A stretch of DNA of 64,000 bases from Salisapilia sapeloensis CBS 127946 (GCA_023334545.1 JAADVB010000033.1:1-64000); one strand, 5' to 3'; shown: positions 35,014 through 42,858, counted from the first letter of the stretch. A program made the numbers and translations. The notes: a model not told the origin generated them from the letters alone.

Positions 35014-36778
35014 TCAGACCTTATTGCTGATACTATCCTCTCCTTGTTTGTCCGACGACAGCATTGGCGCAACACCGTTCGCTCGATTGAGTTGGTCCAA
35101 AACATGCTCAAACGTCGGTCGAGCATCCGGTGGCATCTGCCAACAGTCCTGCATCAATTGCTCGAGCAAAGGTGGACAATTGTCTGGTATCACCGGTCGA
35201 AGCTTATTGTTTAAGACACCCAAAGCTGCTTGGATCTGACTTAAACCTTCATAAGGACATTGACGTGTAATCGTTTCCCATACGACGACACCAAAGGAGA
35301 AGACGTCTGCTTTCTCCGTATACTTTTCTGCCGCAAGGACTTCTGGTGCCATCCACTGTGTCGTACCACAGTTCCCAGTCATCGTCTGGAAATGCGCACG
35401 GACGCGTGCGAGGCCAAAGTCAGAGATTTTAATGGAAAAAGACGAACTAACGAGTAAATTCGGAGACTTGAGGTCTCGATGGAGGATCGGAGGATGGAAG
35501 GAATGGAGATAGTTCATGCCCAACGCTGTGTCTCGAGCGAATCTATAGGTACGTGTCAGAACAAGTAGGTAGAAGAGCAGTAGGTAGAGTGTACTGGAGC
35601 TGAAGCTTTTCATCGATGATATAATCCTGTCGGAGAACGTTCCATAACGATCCTTTCGGGAGGTACTCAATGACGAGGCATCGCGTCGGTGGCTGGAGGC
35701 ATGCGCCCATCATCAAACAAATATTCGGGTGTCTAGAGACAGCATGAGAATAGAGAATAGAATGATCTACGTGCTAACTGTACCGGAGGATGCTCATAAT
35801 CTGGACTTCGGCTTCAAACTCTTCCAAGATTTCGGCCGTCAGGTGCTGGCATACAAGTACTTTGACTGCGACTTCCGTGCCTCTCCATGCACCTCGATGG
35901 ACAGTACCAAAAGCGCCTTGTCCGATCATTTCACCGATCTGGAGCTCTGCATAATCAATCTGGAGACTACTCGTACTCCCTTTTCGTGGTACTTTCGACG
36001 CTTTTCGTTCCTTTGGACTAGATTTCTCCACGACAGCCGCCGGTTCTTCCATCAATGGTGCTGCAGACGTTCGAACGTACATGGGCGAGTGTAAGAATAA
36101 AGGAATTTGAGCCTTTTTCGCCATCTCTAATTGCATCTGAGCTGGTTGTGTGATCTGTGCATCTCGTGGAAAGTGCTTGCCACCGTCCGCTTCTTTCGTT
36201 GCGACAGACATGTCGGTAGGTGGATGAATAAGGTCACTTAGATCCTCCGATTTGTGACGTACGAGTCGCTTTCCACCTCCCTCTCTCGCCGGAGCTAATC
36301 GGCTTTCAAGGTCCGAATCACGAGATCGAACGCGACTATCGTCGTGCCTTTCACTGCCGCTGGACTCGACATCTCCGAGATTGATACGATGCTGTTGGCT
36401 TTGACCGCCAGAGCTTGGAGGCTGCTGCGTACGCGTGTCAGTCAGCTTATACTGCTCCACGGAGGCTTCGTCTTCTATTCGTACAGTAGCACTATGGGCT
36501 CTTCGACGCATCGGGGGCGACCGACGGAATCGACGTAGTGCCTGGGATGGACTATGTGCGGAAGTGACAGCGGCGTGCTCATCATCTGACGAAGACGATG
36601 GCGGTCGTGGCGACGCAGCGGGCTGGAGAAAAGGAATGCTATCCTCATGTGTACTCGGACTCGTCTTGCGCGTATGCCCTGTGTCATCATTAATCCACGG
36701 CTGTAGACGTACGAAGCGCACGTACAGCGCGATGGCGAGTACGAGGAAGCATAAGGAGCCCGTTAAAACCGGGTCCAT
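35014..36778 (-). CDS. TKL-group Ser/Thr kinase with N-terminal membrane anchor (2 introns)
   Basis: IGQGAFGTVH, VAVK, exon HPNICLMMGAC, HRDLKSPNLL, DFG, GTTQWMAPE; TM segment SLCFLVLAIALYV. Confidence 0.9.
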
Positions 36779-37002
36779 TTTCACTTGTACGTTACACTAG
36801 ACTACTGTTTTCCTCGTTTCCAAGCGGAAGTAGATAATATTCAAGCAACTAGTACGTGCTAGACTAGTACTTGTGACGAGTACTGCCTCCTGGGATGCTT
36901 AGGATGAAAATAGGTGTTCCTACCTTCAAGATGGTAAATCGACCGGAATGATAAGAGGAGCATGGACACTCGAGTATGGGTTTCCACCTTGTTTTTTTAT
37001 TA

Positions 37003-39164
37003 TTATCCACTCTCTTGATGTCCATTCATCTTCATTAAAGAGCCGGTCATCGTTGGTGGAAGTACTTGAGTCTGGTGGAATAACCAACTGAGCTTACTAC
37101 TGTCCGTGCCACCCGGGATCGAGTCCCACTCGACTTCAAGTACGTCCAATGGCGTCGTCAATCGGTTCTTGACGCTCGTGATAGCTAACTTGCCTGTTGG
37201 GACGGACTGCACGAGACATTTGACGGACAAAGTGCCATTTTCCTGGAAAAACGGTTCGAGGAAGATTGATCCAGACGCCTTGACACCAGACACGCGTCCT
37301 TCCCCAATGCAACTACCGTCCCATGGCTCGCCTGCAAACAGCCGGATGCTCGCACCGTCTAAATTTACCGATACTTGGTGCAAGCCTAAGGCCAAGATGT
37401 CTTTATGCAATGCAGACGCCATTTGTCGCTTCACCATGCGCTCGACAAACACCTTTAGACCGGACAATCCAGACACTTGGCGTACAAGCGACGGCGCTTC
37501 TTCAATCCGGATGCTCGTCCCACTCACAAGTACCTCTACATGGCATCTATCAGACTAAATATTATAAAGAATTCATGTACAAAAGTGTACCGGTGGTGAA
37601 TTGCTTGCCAATGCTCAAGTCGAAAGCAGATAAAGTCGACTCATTCGCACAAGTCTTCCATCGGACACTGACAAAGACACCTCGTTGGGTATCACAAATA
37701 GGTTGTCCCAAACCGTCTTCAAAGATACGCAAGGCAGTGGACGTGCCTTGCTTCTGTATCGCTAACGGAGCCGATAGACCGTCCAAGTAGCGAGCGATGT
37801 CGTCAACTAAGAGCGCGTGAGAGACGATCGCCAAGACCGTTGGCAACGTCTCGAGCGCTTCTTCATCCAATACAGTCGACGTCGTCGGCTGCAACTGGAT
37901 CCTCGACAGCTCTTTCCTGCCATGGCCATATCGTACTTCCTGCTGGAAGAGCAGGAGACAGTAGCGACTCATGTAGGCTAGATACGCCTCCTGTTGTTCT
38001 TTCGATCGAGGACCAATGACGTTGGCATCTAGCACTTGACTATTAGCGTTCGAGACACTCTCGGCGTCTACGAGTCGCACGAAGAGTCTGTAGTTGTCAC
38101 CAATGTCTAGCTGTAGTTCGTCATCTAGAACGTCAATGACATGAGACGCAGCCATGTTAGCTGGATCACGTAACGCGCCATTCAATAGTGTCTGGAAGAG
38201 CTCTTCACAAAAGACAGAAAACTGGACAGCTCGTAAGACACCAGCATTATGTTCCTGCAGGACTTTGACATCATCGTCTTTGTTCTCCATCTTTTCCAAC
38301 TCTTCTTTCGATAGTTTCGGAAGTGGTGGAGATGGAAGAGTGAATTGTCCCGAGACGTTCACATCGGTCGCGACGATCTGTGCTTGTAACGTACGAGGTG
38401 AGTACTCTTCCGGTTTCTTTACACGAACTAACCCTTTTTCCGTACGACCTAATTCGGCATACGAGAGCTCTGCGATACTACGTGTCTGTGGCTGGAACGT
38501 CGAACCAGAGCTTTGGAAGCTGCAGTCGACTGCGAGAGGTTCTCCGGCTCGAAATGGTTTTGGAATCGTACCGTGCAATGGAGCGCACACCTTCCATCGT
38601 TCTAGGAGATGTGAAAGGCCTTGGAAGAAGACGCTTTCTTTGCCAATAGTAGATGATAACGAGTCGACACCACGAAGGAGGATGCTGCTGGCGTCCTGCA
38701 CTTGTGTCGTCTTGCGTTCGATCAGGTACTCTAGATCCTCTGGCTTGGGCGCCGTATTCTCCCGAATGCAACGCATCTCTTCCAGGTACTCATGTCGACG
38801 TATGAGGTCGATGGAGTTAATGAGCTGATGTAATTCTGCCGTCGCAGCCTGTAGTTCATTCACCACTGGACGATAGTACACTCTCGGATCAATGACATCC
38901 TCTTCCTCCACACTCGCATCTTTCGTCCCCTCCTCCGACTCATCTTTCTTTTCATTACGCACACGTTCCAACTCTTGAATCGAGTGCATGAATAGCTGAG
39001 CATCCGTAAAGTCTCTACGAACGGAACATGAGGCCTCTATTCCAATAAAAACTACTTATATAAAGACCCTACGGCTGCAACACTTCTTCTCCTTGCTCCG
39101 TCACCATCTCGACGGGTTTAAAATCCGTCGGATACAGCGTCACGCCGACATCCTCCGAGCTCAT
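37003..39164 (-). CDS. MED17: Mediator subunit 17-like (2 introns)
   Basis: New exon MSSEDVGVTLYPTDFKPVEMVTEQGEEVLQP (ATG 39164) joins via a 58-nt intron; VVNELQAATAELHQLINSIDLI resembles Med17. A second intron links to the 37527 ORF (QFTT|EVLVSG). Confidence 0.68.
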
Positions 39165-39262: not shown

Positions 39263-41134
39263 TTAGCTCGAGCCGTACTTTAATTTCGCGACTTGGATGG
39301 CGCTTTTGACCATATTAATCGCTCGCACGCGATCCTGTCGCAATACACTGAACGATATCAAGCCTATTAACTGTCCTTTTCGATCCACGGCCGCACCGCC
39401 ACTAAAGCCATTATCGAGCTGCGCTGCCGTCCGTAGCATCGCCTTATCGATTTCTTCACCGTCAAATTCTTGGCTGTCCGTCCCAGAGCAAATTGCATGA
39501 TGCACCGTAATGGTATTATGGCCACTACTCGGGTACCCGAACATCCACATTTCGTCTCCAGGTTCAATATTATTCGAATTCCCGACGCCAACGGGTGTCA
39601 ATTTCTTCTCCAAATCCACGGCGCCGGCGATACGCGTGACGCTCCACTTCTTCGCAATCATCCGATCGGTCACGTCACCAATGTAGAGTCCACTGGGTGG
39701 ATCTGACACGACTTCAGCTTCAATCTGCAGCAATGCATAGTCCAATTCTTCATTACAACACTCTGGTATCGCACGTGCTTGGTACTTCCACAACGGAGGC
39801 AAAGACGTTGACTCCGTAGGTGCAACGAGGATCATAAAGTCTTGACTATAGACACAGTCAAAGGTTTCGCCTTGGAGAACATGATGTGCTGTCGCGATGA
39901 GGCCCTTTTCATGGATCACAATGCCACTCCCGACGTTACAGAGCTCACCGTCGTTTGTTAAGATAGCTACACGCACAGCAGACTGTTGTACTCGTCGTAC
40001 CAGATGTGCGCGATAGTGTTTCATCTGCGCTTTCTTCTGTTTAAACTTGGCGACAGGCGTCACGGGTGTCGTCTCACTTGCGCGTACTTCGTCGTCTTCA
40101 TCATCATTAAAGTCAGCAAGACATGCCGCGGCATTTAGGAGTTTCATACGAGGTCCAAACGGGATACCCAAGTCCCGCAAGTGTCCTGCGTTCATAAGAC
40201 AAAGCGATTCGATATCGATTTCCTCTTGTTCGAACAACGGAGCGTACTTGCTTAGACCGAGAGACGCAAGTAGATTCGACATGACTAGGAAACTCTTCTT
40301 CTTCTCGGCTGCTTTCCGAGCTGTCCATCGAATAGCGAATTTATTTTTCCAGGACAATCCGTCGAAGCCGACGCCATGGATTTCACGTTGGAAAGCTATG
40401 ACACTCTCTCGTTGCGGGTGATTCTCATCGTCCCCAAACTCGCGGACGTAGAGTGGACGCCAGATCACATCTAGCATCGCGCGCTTGTACCAGAATCGAC
40501 ATGCCATACTTGCTAGACACACGTCGACGTGGTTGAGGAAGCTGAGCATGTGGGCAAAGACACCTCGTGGCACCCAGACTTTAAGTGCAATGCTGTTCAT
40601 CGGAGGCTGGTTGCCCGCGAGGACCTTGGGAAAGCACGGCTCACACACGCGGGACTTATGGGCGTGTCCTGGTAGCGCAGCTTTGTACCGCGAGCAAGTC
40701 GCGCAGAAGAGGAGACCGCAGCGACGACATCTGTGAGATCGACGAAGGAGAGAGAACTTGGAGGAGCAGTGCGCGCATCGATTGCGACTCCCTGGCGTCC
40801 ATTTGTCCATCAAGTTATTCGATGCAGCAGACATGGTTGAGAGGACACTAGAGACGGTAGACGTACGAGCACTTCGGTTCATGATAGGATTGGGAAAAGC
40901 TTCATCTGCACTCAGGGGATACGTTGTCGATCCGACCGAGTTCTGTCGACTGCGTTCGTAGGACGAACCGACTGAGTGTTGACGAGACCGCTCGGTCGGA
41001 AGCGCTGCGTTGTTGTACTGGAGCGCATACGCTGATCCATTACGGCTTCGAGATGATGGCGTGGATGCCGTGGGCGTCCCGAGGCTCATGGACCGCAGGG
41101 CTTGCGGCGGCGGCGGCATCTGACCTTGGTCCAT
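39263..41134 (-). CDS. FYVE - F-box - SAM - trypsin-like serine protease multidomain protein
   Basis: FYVE (CAHCSSKFSLLRRSHRCRRCGLLFCATC), F-box (VPRGVFAHMLSFL...ASMACRFWY), SAM (LGLSKYAPLFEQEEID...LRDLGIPFGPRMKLL), protease (TAHHV / DYALL / GFSGG). Confidence 0.85.
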   Translation of the reverse strand: MDQGQMPPPPQALRSMSLGTPTASTPSSRSRNGSAYALQYNNAALPTERSRQHSVGSSYERSRQNSVGSTTYPLSADEAFPNPIMNRSARTSTVSSVLSTMSAASNNLMDKWTPGSRNRCAHCSSKFSLLRRSHRCRRCGLLFCATCSRYKAALPGHAHKSRVCEPCFPKVLAGNQPPMNSIALKVWVPRGVFAHMLSFLNHVDVCLASMACRFWYKRAMLDVIWRPLYVREFGDDENHPQRESVIAFQREIHGVGFDGLSWKNKFAIRWTARKAAEKKKSFLVMSNLLASLGLSKYAPLFEQEEIDIESLCLMNAGHLRDLGIPFGPRMKLLNAAACLADFNDDEDDEVRASETTPVTPVAKFKQKKAQMKHYRAHLVRRVQQSAVRVAILTNDGELCNVGSGIVIHEKGLIATAHHVLQGETFDCVYSQDFMILVAPTESTSLPPLWKYQARAIPECCNEELDYALLQIEAEVVSDPPSGLYIGDVTDRMIAKKWSVTRIAGAVDLEKKLTPVGVGNSNNIEPGDEMWMFGYPSSGHNTITVHHAICSGTDSQEFDGEEIDKAMLRTAAQLDNGFSGGAAVDRKGQLIGLISFSVLRQDRVRAINMVKSAIQVAKLKYGSS

Positions 41135-42339
41135 GGCTGGCTTTTTCAAAGTGTTTCGACAGGGAGTTTGTATGCGTCAAAAGTTTTCGCATCGAAAAGT
41201 CCGGAAGAGTTGACTTGCGACTTGATGGAGGCAGAGGCCATGGACGTTATCAACTCCACGTGTTGACTAGCCCGTTTTTACATGTCTATTGTCACGACCT
41301 TTGTCGAGATCTGCATGGATCTCTAGTTCAAAATGTAGGAATAAATGGGTACACTTGAAGTGTAAGGATTGGAGTACTTGATGTCTACTATTGCTACTCG
41401 ATTCTACTTTACCACGATACCTCATTGGATCTGTAGTAGCGAATGTGCCTAGTCTATACGAAAATCGAATGGGAATCCTTTCACTTTGTTTGTCAGGAGG
41501 TGTGCATGTCTTCTATAGGTAAAACTGTACGTAGAAGCCATGAAAAGGTGGTCGAAAAGAAAGAAAGTTGTGGTAGTGCAGGATGATGTAGAAAGCTTAT
41601 TAAAGATCCATGTACGGAAGCCTTCGATCGCTGTGAGTGCTATTGCGAACCTACGACTGATCAGATGTGGCGACGACTGTAAGGTCTCGCGCATATCCTG
41701 GATCGAACCCAGCTTTCGACGGATGCAATACCGCAGTCGATGGAACATCGAGTTGAAGCAAGAGATTCGCTTCGCAAACAAACTCGTTTATGACTACTTC
41801 AAGTAGATCCTAGTTACTGGTATCTTCACATTGGACGACAATGAAGAAAGAATCAAGGAATGATGTCGTGATTCCATGCTAACCAGACCATGATCCGATC
41901 GGAAATGCAAAGGAACGTCGATCACTCCGCTCACGATTCGATCGACGAGTATATATCAACCTCATGATTGAAACCAAGGTCCTTAAATTTGATTATATCC
42001 CACTATAATTCGAAACTCAAAACGAATGAGCACAAGATACACGCACATAGGATCCTCTAAAAGATTTTATGATAGATATGCACGCGCACGAGAGAGATAA
42101 AATCCAAAAATAGCAATCCACCCTCCTCACCTTATACGGAGCTCCTTGCCACGCGGCCACCCCCAACTTCAAATTGTCTCGTCGTAGGCATCTAATATTA
42201 CAGGTTCCTTGTCGCATACGCTCTATACATAAAACCTTTTATAAAGTATGATATATCACAGTTCCATCGTATTTCGAAATAGATCAGTGCCCTGGCTTCA
42301 GGCCCACAATTAAAAGTCCGGATCAGCGAGCAAGTAGAT

Positions 42340-42858
42340 ATGCCATCGCCCAACAAGGATGACGTCGAGCTATCGGAGAATGAGATCCGTTCCATGCTTC
42401 TAGGCCCGAACGGCAACTTGACGCGTGATTTCGAGGCCGTGCTCACGAAACTCTTCATCTCGTTCTTGGAGCAGCCGACGGATCGCAGTCTCACCCTCGA
42501 CAAGCTCCGTGAGTTCAGCAAAGTCTGCAACGACGGCAAGCAGTTCTCGGACGACGAGATCAAGGAGATCCAGACGTACTTCCAGTGCGATGACAAGCGC
42601 GGACTCACTTTGAAAGGGTTCAAAGACATGTACCATACGCAATCGAGCGCCGAGCCATTGGAGACGTGGCGTGACATGAAGAAGCTAGGCTACGCGCAAG
42701 ACCTGCTGGACCGACGGGAGAAGGCTCTTCACTGCCGTGTGTGTGACGCACCGTCGAACCTTGTTTGCTCTCGTTGCAAGACGGTGCGTTACTGTGGTGC
42801 GGAGTGTCAGAAGAAGGATTGGAAGAATGCGCATAAGAATGCTTGCAAACCTCTCTAA
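42340..42858 (+). CDS. EF-hand-like + MYND zinc finger protein
   Basis: CRVCDAPSNLVCSRCKTVRYCGAECQKKDWKNAHKNAC; N-terminal EF-hand-like helices (GLTLKGFKDMY...ETWRDMKKLGY). Confidence 0.82.
   Translation: MPSPNKDDVELSENEIRSMLLGPNGNLTRDFEAVLTKLFISFLEQPTDRSLTLDKLREFSKVCNDGKQFSDDEIKEIQTYFQCDDKRGLTLKGFKDMYHTQSSAEPLETWRDMKKLGYAQDLLDRREKALHCRVCDAPSNLVCSRCKTVRYCGAECQKKDWKNAHKNACKPL

Follow-up and report, generated by a model that had tools for sequence, protein, structure and literature searches.

The DNA analysed here, referred to as the window, is a stretch of 64,000 nucleotides from Salisapilia sapeloensis CBS 127946 (GCA_023334545.1 JAADVB010000033.1:1-64000), whose minus strand carries a single-exon gene for a protein of 623 residues composed of a FYVE-type zinc finger, an F-box, a SAM domain and a chymotrypsin-fold serine protease domain. 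The protein may be a conserved, oomycete-specific, cytosolic HtrA-like protease with the framework of an F-box protein, which would link limited proteolysis at a membrane to the attachment of ubiquitin. Drawn from sequence comparison and modelling, this reading is proposed tentatively, at a little below an even chance.

The original prediction, made from the nucleotide sequence, had placed the four domains in one intronless open reading frame (ORF), and this was borne out: the frame is uninterrupted over 623 residues, and the nucleotide ranges agree within a few codons. The ORF (39263..41149, minus strand) opens at an upstream TTG, its first ATG lies at 41134, and it contains no internal stop codon. 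The 'MD' N-terminus of the window protein is common to the orthologues, and each of the orthologous genes called for A. invadans and P. fragariae likewise occupies one exon of matching length. By profile, the FYVE, SAM and Trypsin_2 domains scored above their Pfam thresholds as expected; the F-box was below threshold in the window protein and was supported at the level of the family only. No signal peptide, in agreement with the prediction, and no membrane segment was detected in a hydropathy scan (maximum 19-residue Kyte-Doolittle mean, 1.29, within the F-box; first 30 residues, -0.78). Because the N-terminus is hydrophilic and no 19-residue segment is hydrophobic enough to span a membrane, a cytosolic location is the simplest reading.

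Using a word-index search, 23 relatives were retrieved, all from oomycetes (Phytophthora, Pythium, Globisporangium, Aphanomyces, Saprolegnia, Achlya, Thraustotheca and Albugo) and 52-81% identical, and the full-length ones had the same domain order. The family occurs, with a gene of one exon, in Peronosporales, Pythiales, Albuginales and Saprolegniales, and the uninterrupted domain order was found in at least 20 proteins from these four orders. The window protein itself was absent from the searched collection (its top match was 79% identical), and in the tree it has a longer branch than the other oomycetes (0.19 versus 0.04-0.08). When 1.84 billion representatives were scanned with the profile, the complete architecture was recovered from the oomycete family only (two full-length representatives and short fragments), and the other matches were to single domains, apart from three proteins (P0117, P0106 and P0162, described below) that matched over the FYVE–F-box region. 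No characterised protein with this combination was found in databases or the literature, as the prediction had supposed; no description of the architecture turned up in the literature searched, which covered FYVE and AF proteins of oomycetes as well as QPX peptidases, and a mention in a survey table is possible. Binding domains are known in F-box proteins, whereas active proteases are not known to occur in them. The further suggestion of an undescribed system was correct for the function; the family itself already has entries in public databases, where its members form an orthologue group conserved in oomycetes under automatic names ('serine protease family S01B', 'FYVE-type domain-containing protein'). 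The automatic name of P0018 from Aphanomyces cochlioides, 'E3 ubiquitin-protein ligase znrf1', was without support in this analysis, and the gene model of P0013 from Globisporangium splendens is corrupted from the end of the FYVE finger through the F-box.

The protease domain gave the strongest Pfam match of the protein (Trypsin_2, residues 402-592; 66.1 bits, cut-off 27.6). The predicted triad, with its His in TAHHV, Asp in ELDYAL and Ser in GFSGG, was confirmed as His418 (the second His of TAHHV), Asp465 and Ser578, which are invariant in 16 of 16 oomycete sequences. In an alignment of 35 sequences including distant relatives, Asp465 and Ser578 again showed no variation, and His418 was almost fully conserved, at no less than 90%. 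The residue after the catalytic His, at position 419 (window 39878-39880, minus strand), is Val in the window protein and Cys in every other aligned orthologue (TA-x-HC). Conservation is highest in the C-terminal barrel: over a range that reaches from Saprolegniales to Peronosporales, 60 of its 88 columns do not vary, and the mean pairwise identity is 87% (first barrel, 74%). Together with the 79% mean identity of the SAM domain across orders, this value indicates that purifying selection is strong and that it acts on a functional enzyme.

When residues 371-623 were modelled with AlphaFold2 (AF2) from the 35-sequence alignment, a mean predicted local distance difference test score (pLDDT) of 93.1 and a predicted template modelling score of 0.91 were obtained. 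The top Foldseek matches of this model were HTRA1, Deg1, DegQ, DegP and DegS (E about 1e-13; template modelling scores, 0.6 to 0.8), and by sequence the domain matched Deg5 (5e-7) and HTRA1. The window protease shares with the HtrA/DegP proteases (MEROPS S1C: HTRA1-3, DegP/Q/S and plant Deg1/5/8) the chymotrypsin fold, the triad, and the helix and strand that lead into the first barrel; these are its best matches in both sequence and fold, yet identity is only about 18-24%. It differs from them in lacking both a PDZ domain and a signal or transit peptide, in an insertion of about 40 residues, in an N-terminal half made up of FYVE, F-box and SAM, and in its Ser motif, which reads DNGFSGG in place of GNSGGP. 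No PDZ domain was matched by Pfam, and the protein stops 18 residues past the protease domain; the NCBIfam HtrA models all scored far under their cut-offs on the window protein (for example, 39.7 versus 416 bits). Because of the missing PDZ domain and these scores, the domain is classed from sequence and model as HtrA-like (S1C-like) and not as a canonical member of the HtrA family. Several orthologues are labelled MEROPS S1B (V8-type glutamyl-endopeptidase); this label was rejected, since all top sequence and fold matches were of the S1C/HtrA type. One JGI orthologue is labelled S1-C. The insertion was modelled with pLDDT 81-95 and is common to the environmental relatives described below.

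For the F-box, a family profile was built from residues 180-282 of 14 orthologues and searched against all PDB sequences. The top matches were all F-box proteins, aligned in register at profile positions 7-62: FBXW7 (1.2e-4) and beta-TrCP (2e-3), followed by KDM2A/B, FBXW12/19/21, FBXO4, Skp2 and FBXL2/5; ribosomal eL24 appeared further down the list (E about 0.1-0.7). The Pfam F-box-like model matched 15 of 16 orthologues at E <= 0.01 (best, 3.5e-7), and PF00646 matched five of the 16. Eleven of the 45 columns are invariant, including Pro189, the mean identity (66%) is above that of the FYVE finger, and the hydrophobic core is kept in all orders; the minimum pairwise identity, 29%, is the lowest among the folded domains. 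An F-box is accepted as present at the family level. The SCF (Skp1–cullin–F-box) receptors FBXW7, beta-TrCP, Skp2 and KDM2A/B resemble the window protein in the F-box register, the leading Pro, the hydrophobic helices and the helical linker that follows; in those receptors a WD40, leucine-rich repeat (LRR) or other binding domain comes after the F-box, whereas the oomycete protein has a SAM domain and an intact protease.

The FYVE–F-box region is found together in other proteins as well. It aligned contiguously with P0117 of the amoebozoan Vermistella antarctica (31% identity over 134 residues, E 4e-19), in which residues 319-1308 form a RhoGEF-PH-FYVE-F-box-WD40 array; this protein joins a Rho exchange factor to an F-box/WD40 receptor that is targeted to membranes. 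The environmental fragment P0162 likewise aligned contiguously and contains FYVE and F-box, with WD40 only weakly matched by Pfam (E 2e-4, under the cut-off), and P0106 contains RhoGEF, FYVE and WD40, with the F-box not among the Pfam matches listed. Identity over the cassette is 28-31% across about 135 residues in this group of proteins. The FYVE–F-box–WD40 proteins differ from the oomycete protein in their canonical RRHHCR motif, in their WD40 propeller (weak in P0162) and in having neither SAM nor protease; the slot after the F-box, occupied in P0117 by the substrate-binding propeller, holds SAM and protease in the oomycete protein.

The SAM domain (pLDDT about 76-84; 29 of 56 columns invariant) is closest among solved structures to the SAM domains of Sans (4e-8), ANKS6, BICC1, ANKS3 and tankyrase. 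As these nearest SAMs are of the polymer-forming or adaptor type, SAM-driven clustering, which the prediction had also suggested, is plausible. The FYVE finger matched RUFY1 (3e-11) and EEA1 (8e-11) as its closest solved structures, with residue-level alignments, and all eight zinc-ligand Cys residues are present at canonical spacing (120, 123, 136, 139, 144, 147, 164 and 167). The RVC motif is kept as S-R-V-C at 161-164 and is nearly invariant, the residues aligned with the membrane-insertion loop of EEA1 are Leu-Leu, and the pocket region is more basic than usual. Given the Leu-Leu loop and the basic pocket, binding of the finger to an acidic lipid membrane is likely.

Outside the oomycetes, the nearest relatives of the protease domain were found as environmental eukaryotic Trypsin_2 proteins (P0043, P0045, P0048, P0051, P0059, P0060, P0064, P0075, P0085, P0127 and P0133), with whole-domain matches of 75-121 bits. 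They belong to the same protease subfamily and carry the insertion, most of them also DNGFSGG, and differ from the oomycete protein in that their N-terminal parts are without FYVE, F-box and SAM. Their contigs are about 1.3-3.5 kb long, and the one examined holds that gene alone and is transcript-like. In a quick maximum-likelihood tree of the protease, the oomycete sequences formed one group with a support of 99 in the Shimodaira–Hasegawa-like approximate likelihood ratio test (SH-aLRT), and a branch with SH-aLRT 99 split the oomycete and environmental sequences from ten HtrA-like sequences, a small sample, with the root placed by assumption. In the word-index search with the protease region, scores dropped from 347 bits (oomycetes) to 56 bits (bacterial S1C), and with this gap no close relatives lie in that size range. 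The protease part was also submitted to a protein-atlas feature search, which returned generic Trypsin_2 clusters of bacteria and phages only and was uninformative. A transcript of the thraustochytrid QPX labelled S01B has its best match from P. infestans, and labyrinthulids may have a related protease.

Upstream of the protease, a WW domain was found in P0064 and P0127, and a candidate CUE segment in P0064, P0085 and P0174 (environmental; L001 1-1908). When the CUE segment was searched as a profile against the PDB, CUEDC1 (3.6e-3) and Tollip (1.2e-2) were the only sensible matches, with the Phe-Pro and C-terminal Leu motifs in register. CUE is a ubiquitin-binding domain. On this moderate evidence a CUE domain is probable in the three proteins, and the probable CUE together with WW would form a second, independent link of the protease clade to ubiquitin, also with moderate evidence. 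When the N-terminal parts of eight relatives were scanned with Pfam at E <= 1, WW and the weak CUE were the only matches. A degenerate F-box just before the protease of the environmental relatives was considered and rejected: hhalign aligned the expected helices, but at E 0.18 and a probability of 0.3%. The (WW–)CUE–protease architecture is unnamed in the sources, and these comparisons define a eukaryotic Trypsin_2 sub-clade, so far unnamed, that stands repeatedly beside ubiquitin-related modules. Two independent associations with the ubiquitin system were observed, one of them through the probable CUE of the relatives. The WW and CUE modules of these relatives and the FYVE–F-box cassette ahead of WD40 are both in keeping with a protease that is linked to ubiquitin and associated with a membrane.

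In the mechanism proposed, the variant FYVE finger, with its Leu-Leu loop and very basic pocket, would bring the protein to a membrane carrying acidic phosphoinositides, probably that of the endosome. The F-box, judged by its motif, would dock the protein on Skp1 and thereby on an SCF-type ubiquitin ligase, and the SAM domain would stand in for the PDZ domain of classical HtrA proteases, so that self-association controls assembly and activation of the protease. The protease domain, whose triad and fold are seen and whose activity is predicted, would occupy the WD40/LRR substrate slot of ordinary F-box proteins, where it would bind and cut clients. The net outcome would be limited proteolysis and ubiquitin tagging at the membrane, with the clients, the protease itself or both of these as targets. 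Endoproteases linked to ubiquitin include DDI1/DDI2 (UBL and retropepsin) and RHBDL4 (rhomboid and UIM); they offer a functional analogy only, a protease combined with a module of the ubiquitin system, as the catalytic class and the coupling module differ, and homology is not claimed. A bolder version holds that the DNGFSGG clade as a whole consists of protist endoproteases of the ubiquitin pathway, and that the oomycete protein is an SCF 'cut-and-tag' machine on phosphoinositide membranes, the client being cleaved and its fragment ubiquitylated in one complex with SAM polymerisation as the switch; it is speculative and improbable.

Several observations weigh against coupled cutting and tagging at a membrane. 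On the window sequence, Pfam F-box-like reached only 19.4 bits (residues 192-230, E 9e-4), under the cut-off of 24.3, and the F-box was modelled poorly (pLDDT below 50) in a full-length AF2 model. This model, calculated from 16 orthologues, had a pLDDT of 48 and was confident in FYVE and SAM only, and neither inter-domain geometry nor F-box packing is taken from it. The CUE call in the relatives is weak (Pfam E 0.056, sub-threshold), its PDB profile value being derived from three sequences. The FYVE finger is without the Asp of WxxD: the window protein reads W-T-P-G, and no orthologue has Asp at that column. Its R(R/K)HHCR motif reads R-S-H-R-C-R where EEA1 has RRHHCR and RUFY1 has RKHHCR; R132, H134, R135, C136 and R137 are invariant across orthologues, with S, A or P at position 133. 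Finally, domain architecture alone is no proof of a coupled mechanism, since oomycetes are known for prolific domain shuffling.

Both altered FYVE positions belong to the pocket that holds the head group of phosphatidylinositol 3-phosphate (PI3P). As two of the three PI3P signature motifs are missing, PI3P specificity is doubtful, and the altered signature suggests that the lipid specificity is changed or relaxed. The established role 'FYVE binds PI3P', on which the prediction had relied, is accordingly not simply transferable to this finger, although its eight Cys residues and RVC motif are kept. The altered sites lie at window 40724-40741 and 40790-40804 (minus strand), and the alteration is invariant across all oomycete orthologues.

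Other functions can be set beside coupled proteolysis and ubiquitylation. If the F-box only gave the protein a short life through SCF auto-ubiquitylation, it would be a safety handle on a self-limiting protease, and substrates would be cut but not ubiquitylated. The same domain evidence would fit, with an intact protease lacking the PDZ gate of HtrA, and F-box proteins are commonly unstable through auto-ubiquitylation; left unexplained would be the WW and CUE client/ubiquitin modules of the related protease clade and the FYVE–F-box cassette ahead of a substrate-binding WD40 elsewhere, and we regard this account as unlikely. A membrane-associated quality-control protease with a vestigial or structural F-box, and no functional tie to Skp1 or ubiquitin, is rather unlikely. 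It would suit an F-box that is the weakest Pfam match of the protein and has the lowest minimum pairwise identity of the folded domains, as well as fold matches to the HtrA type, which are the classical enzymes of protein quality control. A vestigial F-box, however, would hardly have kept Pro189 and its hydrophobic core in all orders, with 11 of 45 columns invariant and 66% mean identity, or have nothing but F-boxes at the top of its PDB list.

A Skp1 complex outside SCF could also be envisaged, cullin-free and acting in membrane traffic, with the protease processing a trafficking component. The F-box of yeast Rcy1 binds Skp1 without a cullin in endosome recycling, and FYVE beside F-box suggests an endomembrane site in the oomycete protein. 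The likeness to Rcy1 is, however, confined to the F-box, and the present evidence does not tell SCF from non-SCF use; such a complex is very unlikely. An artefact, whether neighbouring genes fused by chance in one ORF or a decaying pseudogene, is effectively excluded: no supporting point was found, and against it stand the same uninterrupted domain order across the four oomycete orders, single-exon calls of matching length elsewhere, the absence of internal stops, and a neighbouring zf-MYND gene shared with P. fragariae. Coupled proteolysis and ubiquitin tagging is retained as the proposed reading, and the features of the gene are collected in Table 1.

Table 1. Features of the FYVE–F-box–SAM–protease gene in the window
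Feature	Residues	Window position	Strand	Support or remark
Coding sequence, single exon, complete	1-623	39263..41134	(-)	623 residues and stop
N-terminal region, Ser/Ala/Pro/Arg/Thr-rich	1-104	40823..41134	(-)	Poorly conserved, mean pairwise identity 27%; pLDDT about 30
FYVE-type zinc finger	112-171	40622..40801	(-)	Pfam PF01363, 49.7 bits (cut-off 27.8); pLDDT about 80
F-box	187-231	40442..40576	(-)	Pro189 invariant; family-level profile support
Linker, F-box to SAM	232-283	40286..40441	(-)	Mostly helical (full-length model, low confidence); mean identity 53%
SAM domain	284-339	40118..40285	(-)	Pfam SAM_1, 38.8 bits (cut-off 23); SAM_2, 30.7 bits (cut-off 20.5)
Acidic variable linker	340-359	40058..40117	(-)	Alignment and composition
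HtrA-like chymotrypsin-fold serine protease domain	371-605	39320..40024	(-)	Leading helix; PDZ absent
Catalytic His codon (second His of TAHHV)	418	39881..39883	(-)	Column conservation
Catalytic Asp codon (ELDYAL)	465	39740..39742	(-)	Column conservation
Subfamily-specific insertion, starting V-S-D-P-P-S-G-L	476-517	39584..39709	(-)	After the Asp strand; beyond Pfam model length
Catalytic Ser codon (DNGFSGG motif)	578	39401..39403	(-)	Column conservation

In the N-terminal region of the window protein, three RxRxxS motifs occur at residues 29, 49 and 61 (residues 29-66; window 40940-41050, minus strand); two of them lie inside a tandem duplicated unit, ERSRQ(H/N)SVGS, and the remaining one is RSRNGS at residue 29. 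Most orthologues have a single RxRQxS (R-x-R-Q-x-S core) N-terminal to FYVE. RxRxxS fits the consensus of basophilic AGC kinases, and the RxRQxS motif suggests a candidate basophilic-kinase site and phospho-regulation.

A zf-MYND gene lies upstream of the protease-fusion gene in divergent orientation (window 42340-42858, plus strand; P. fragariae L002, 4087-4711), with a gap of about 1.2 kb, and the window and P. fragariae have this microsynteny in common. Next to the protease-fusion gene on its downstream side lies a homologue of Mediator subunit 17 (Med17; window 37562-38989, minus strand; Pfam 32.5 bits, E 5e-8). A protein-kinase domain extends over two adjacent ORFs (window 35014-35670 and 35774-36784, minus strand), the N-lobe beginning in the upstream ORF and the C-lobe lying in the downstream one; as the lobes are split in this way, a short intron probably separates the two ORFs. 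In A. invadans (L003, 2819-5386) a myotubularin-related gene is the immediate upstream neighbour of the orthologue, which is not so in the window, and the arrangement may be a coincidence. The myotubularin-related family includes PI3P phosphatases.

Should the proposed coupling hold, limited proteolysis and ubiquitylation would be united at a membrane in one polypeptide, which would be a new logic of regulated protein turnover. From its presence in four orders, the 87% identity of its catalytic half and an architecture not found outside oomycetes among the 1.84 billion representatives, the gene is probably important to oomycete cell biology, and it would probably serve as a lineage-specific handle for the study of oomycete pathogens of plants and animals.

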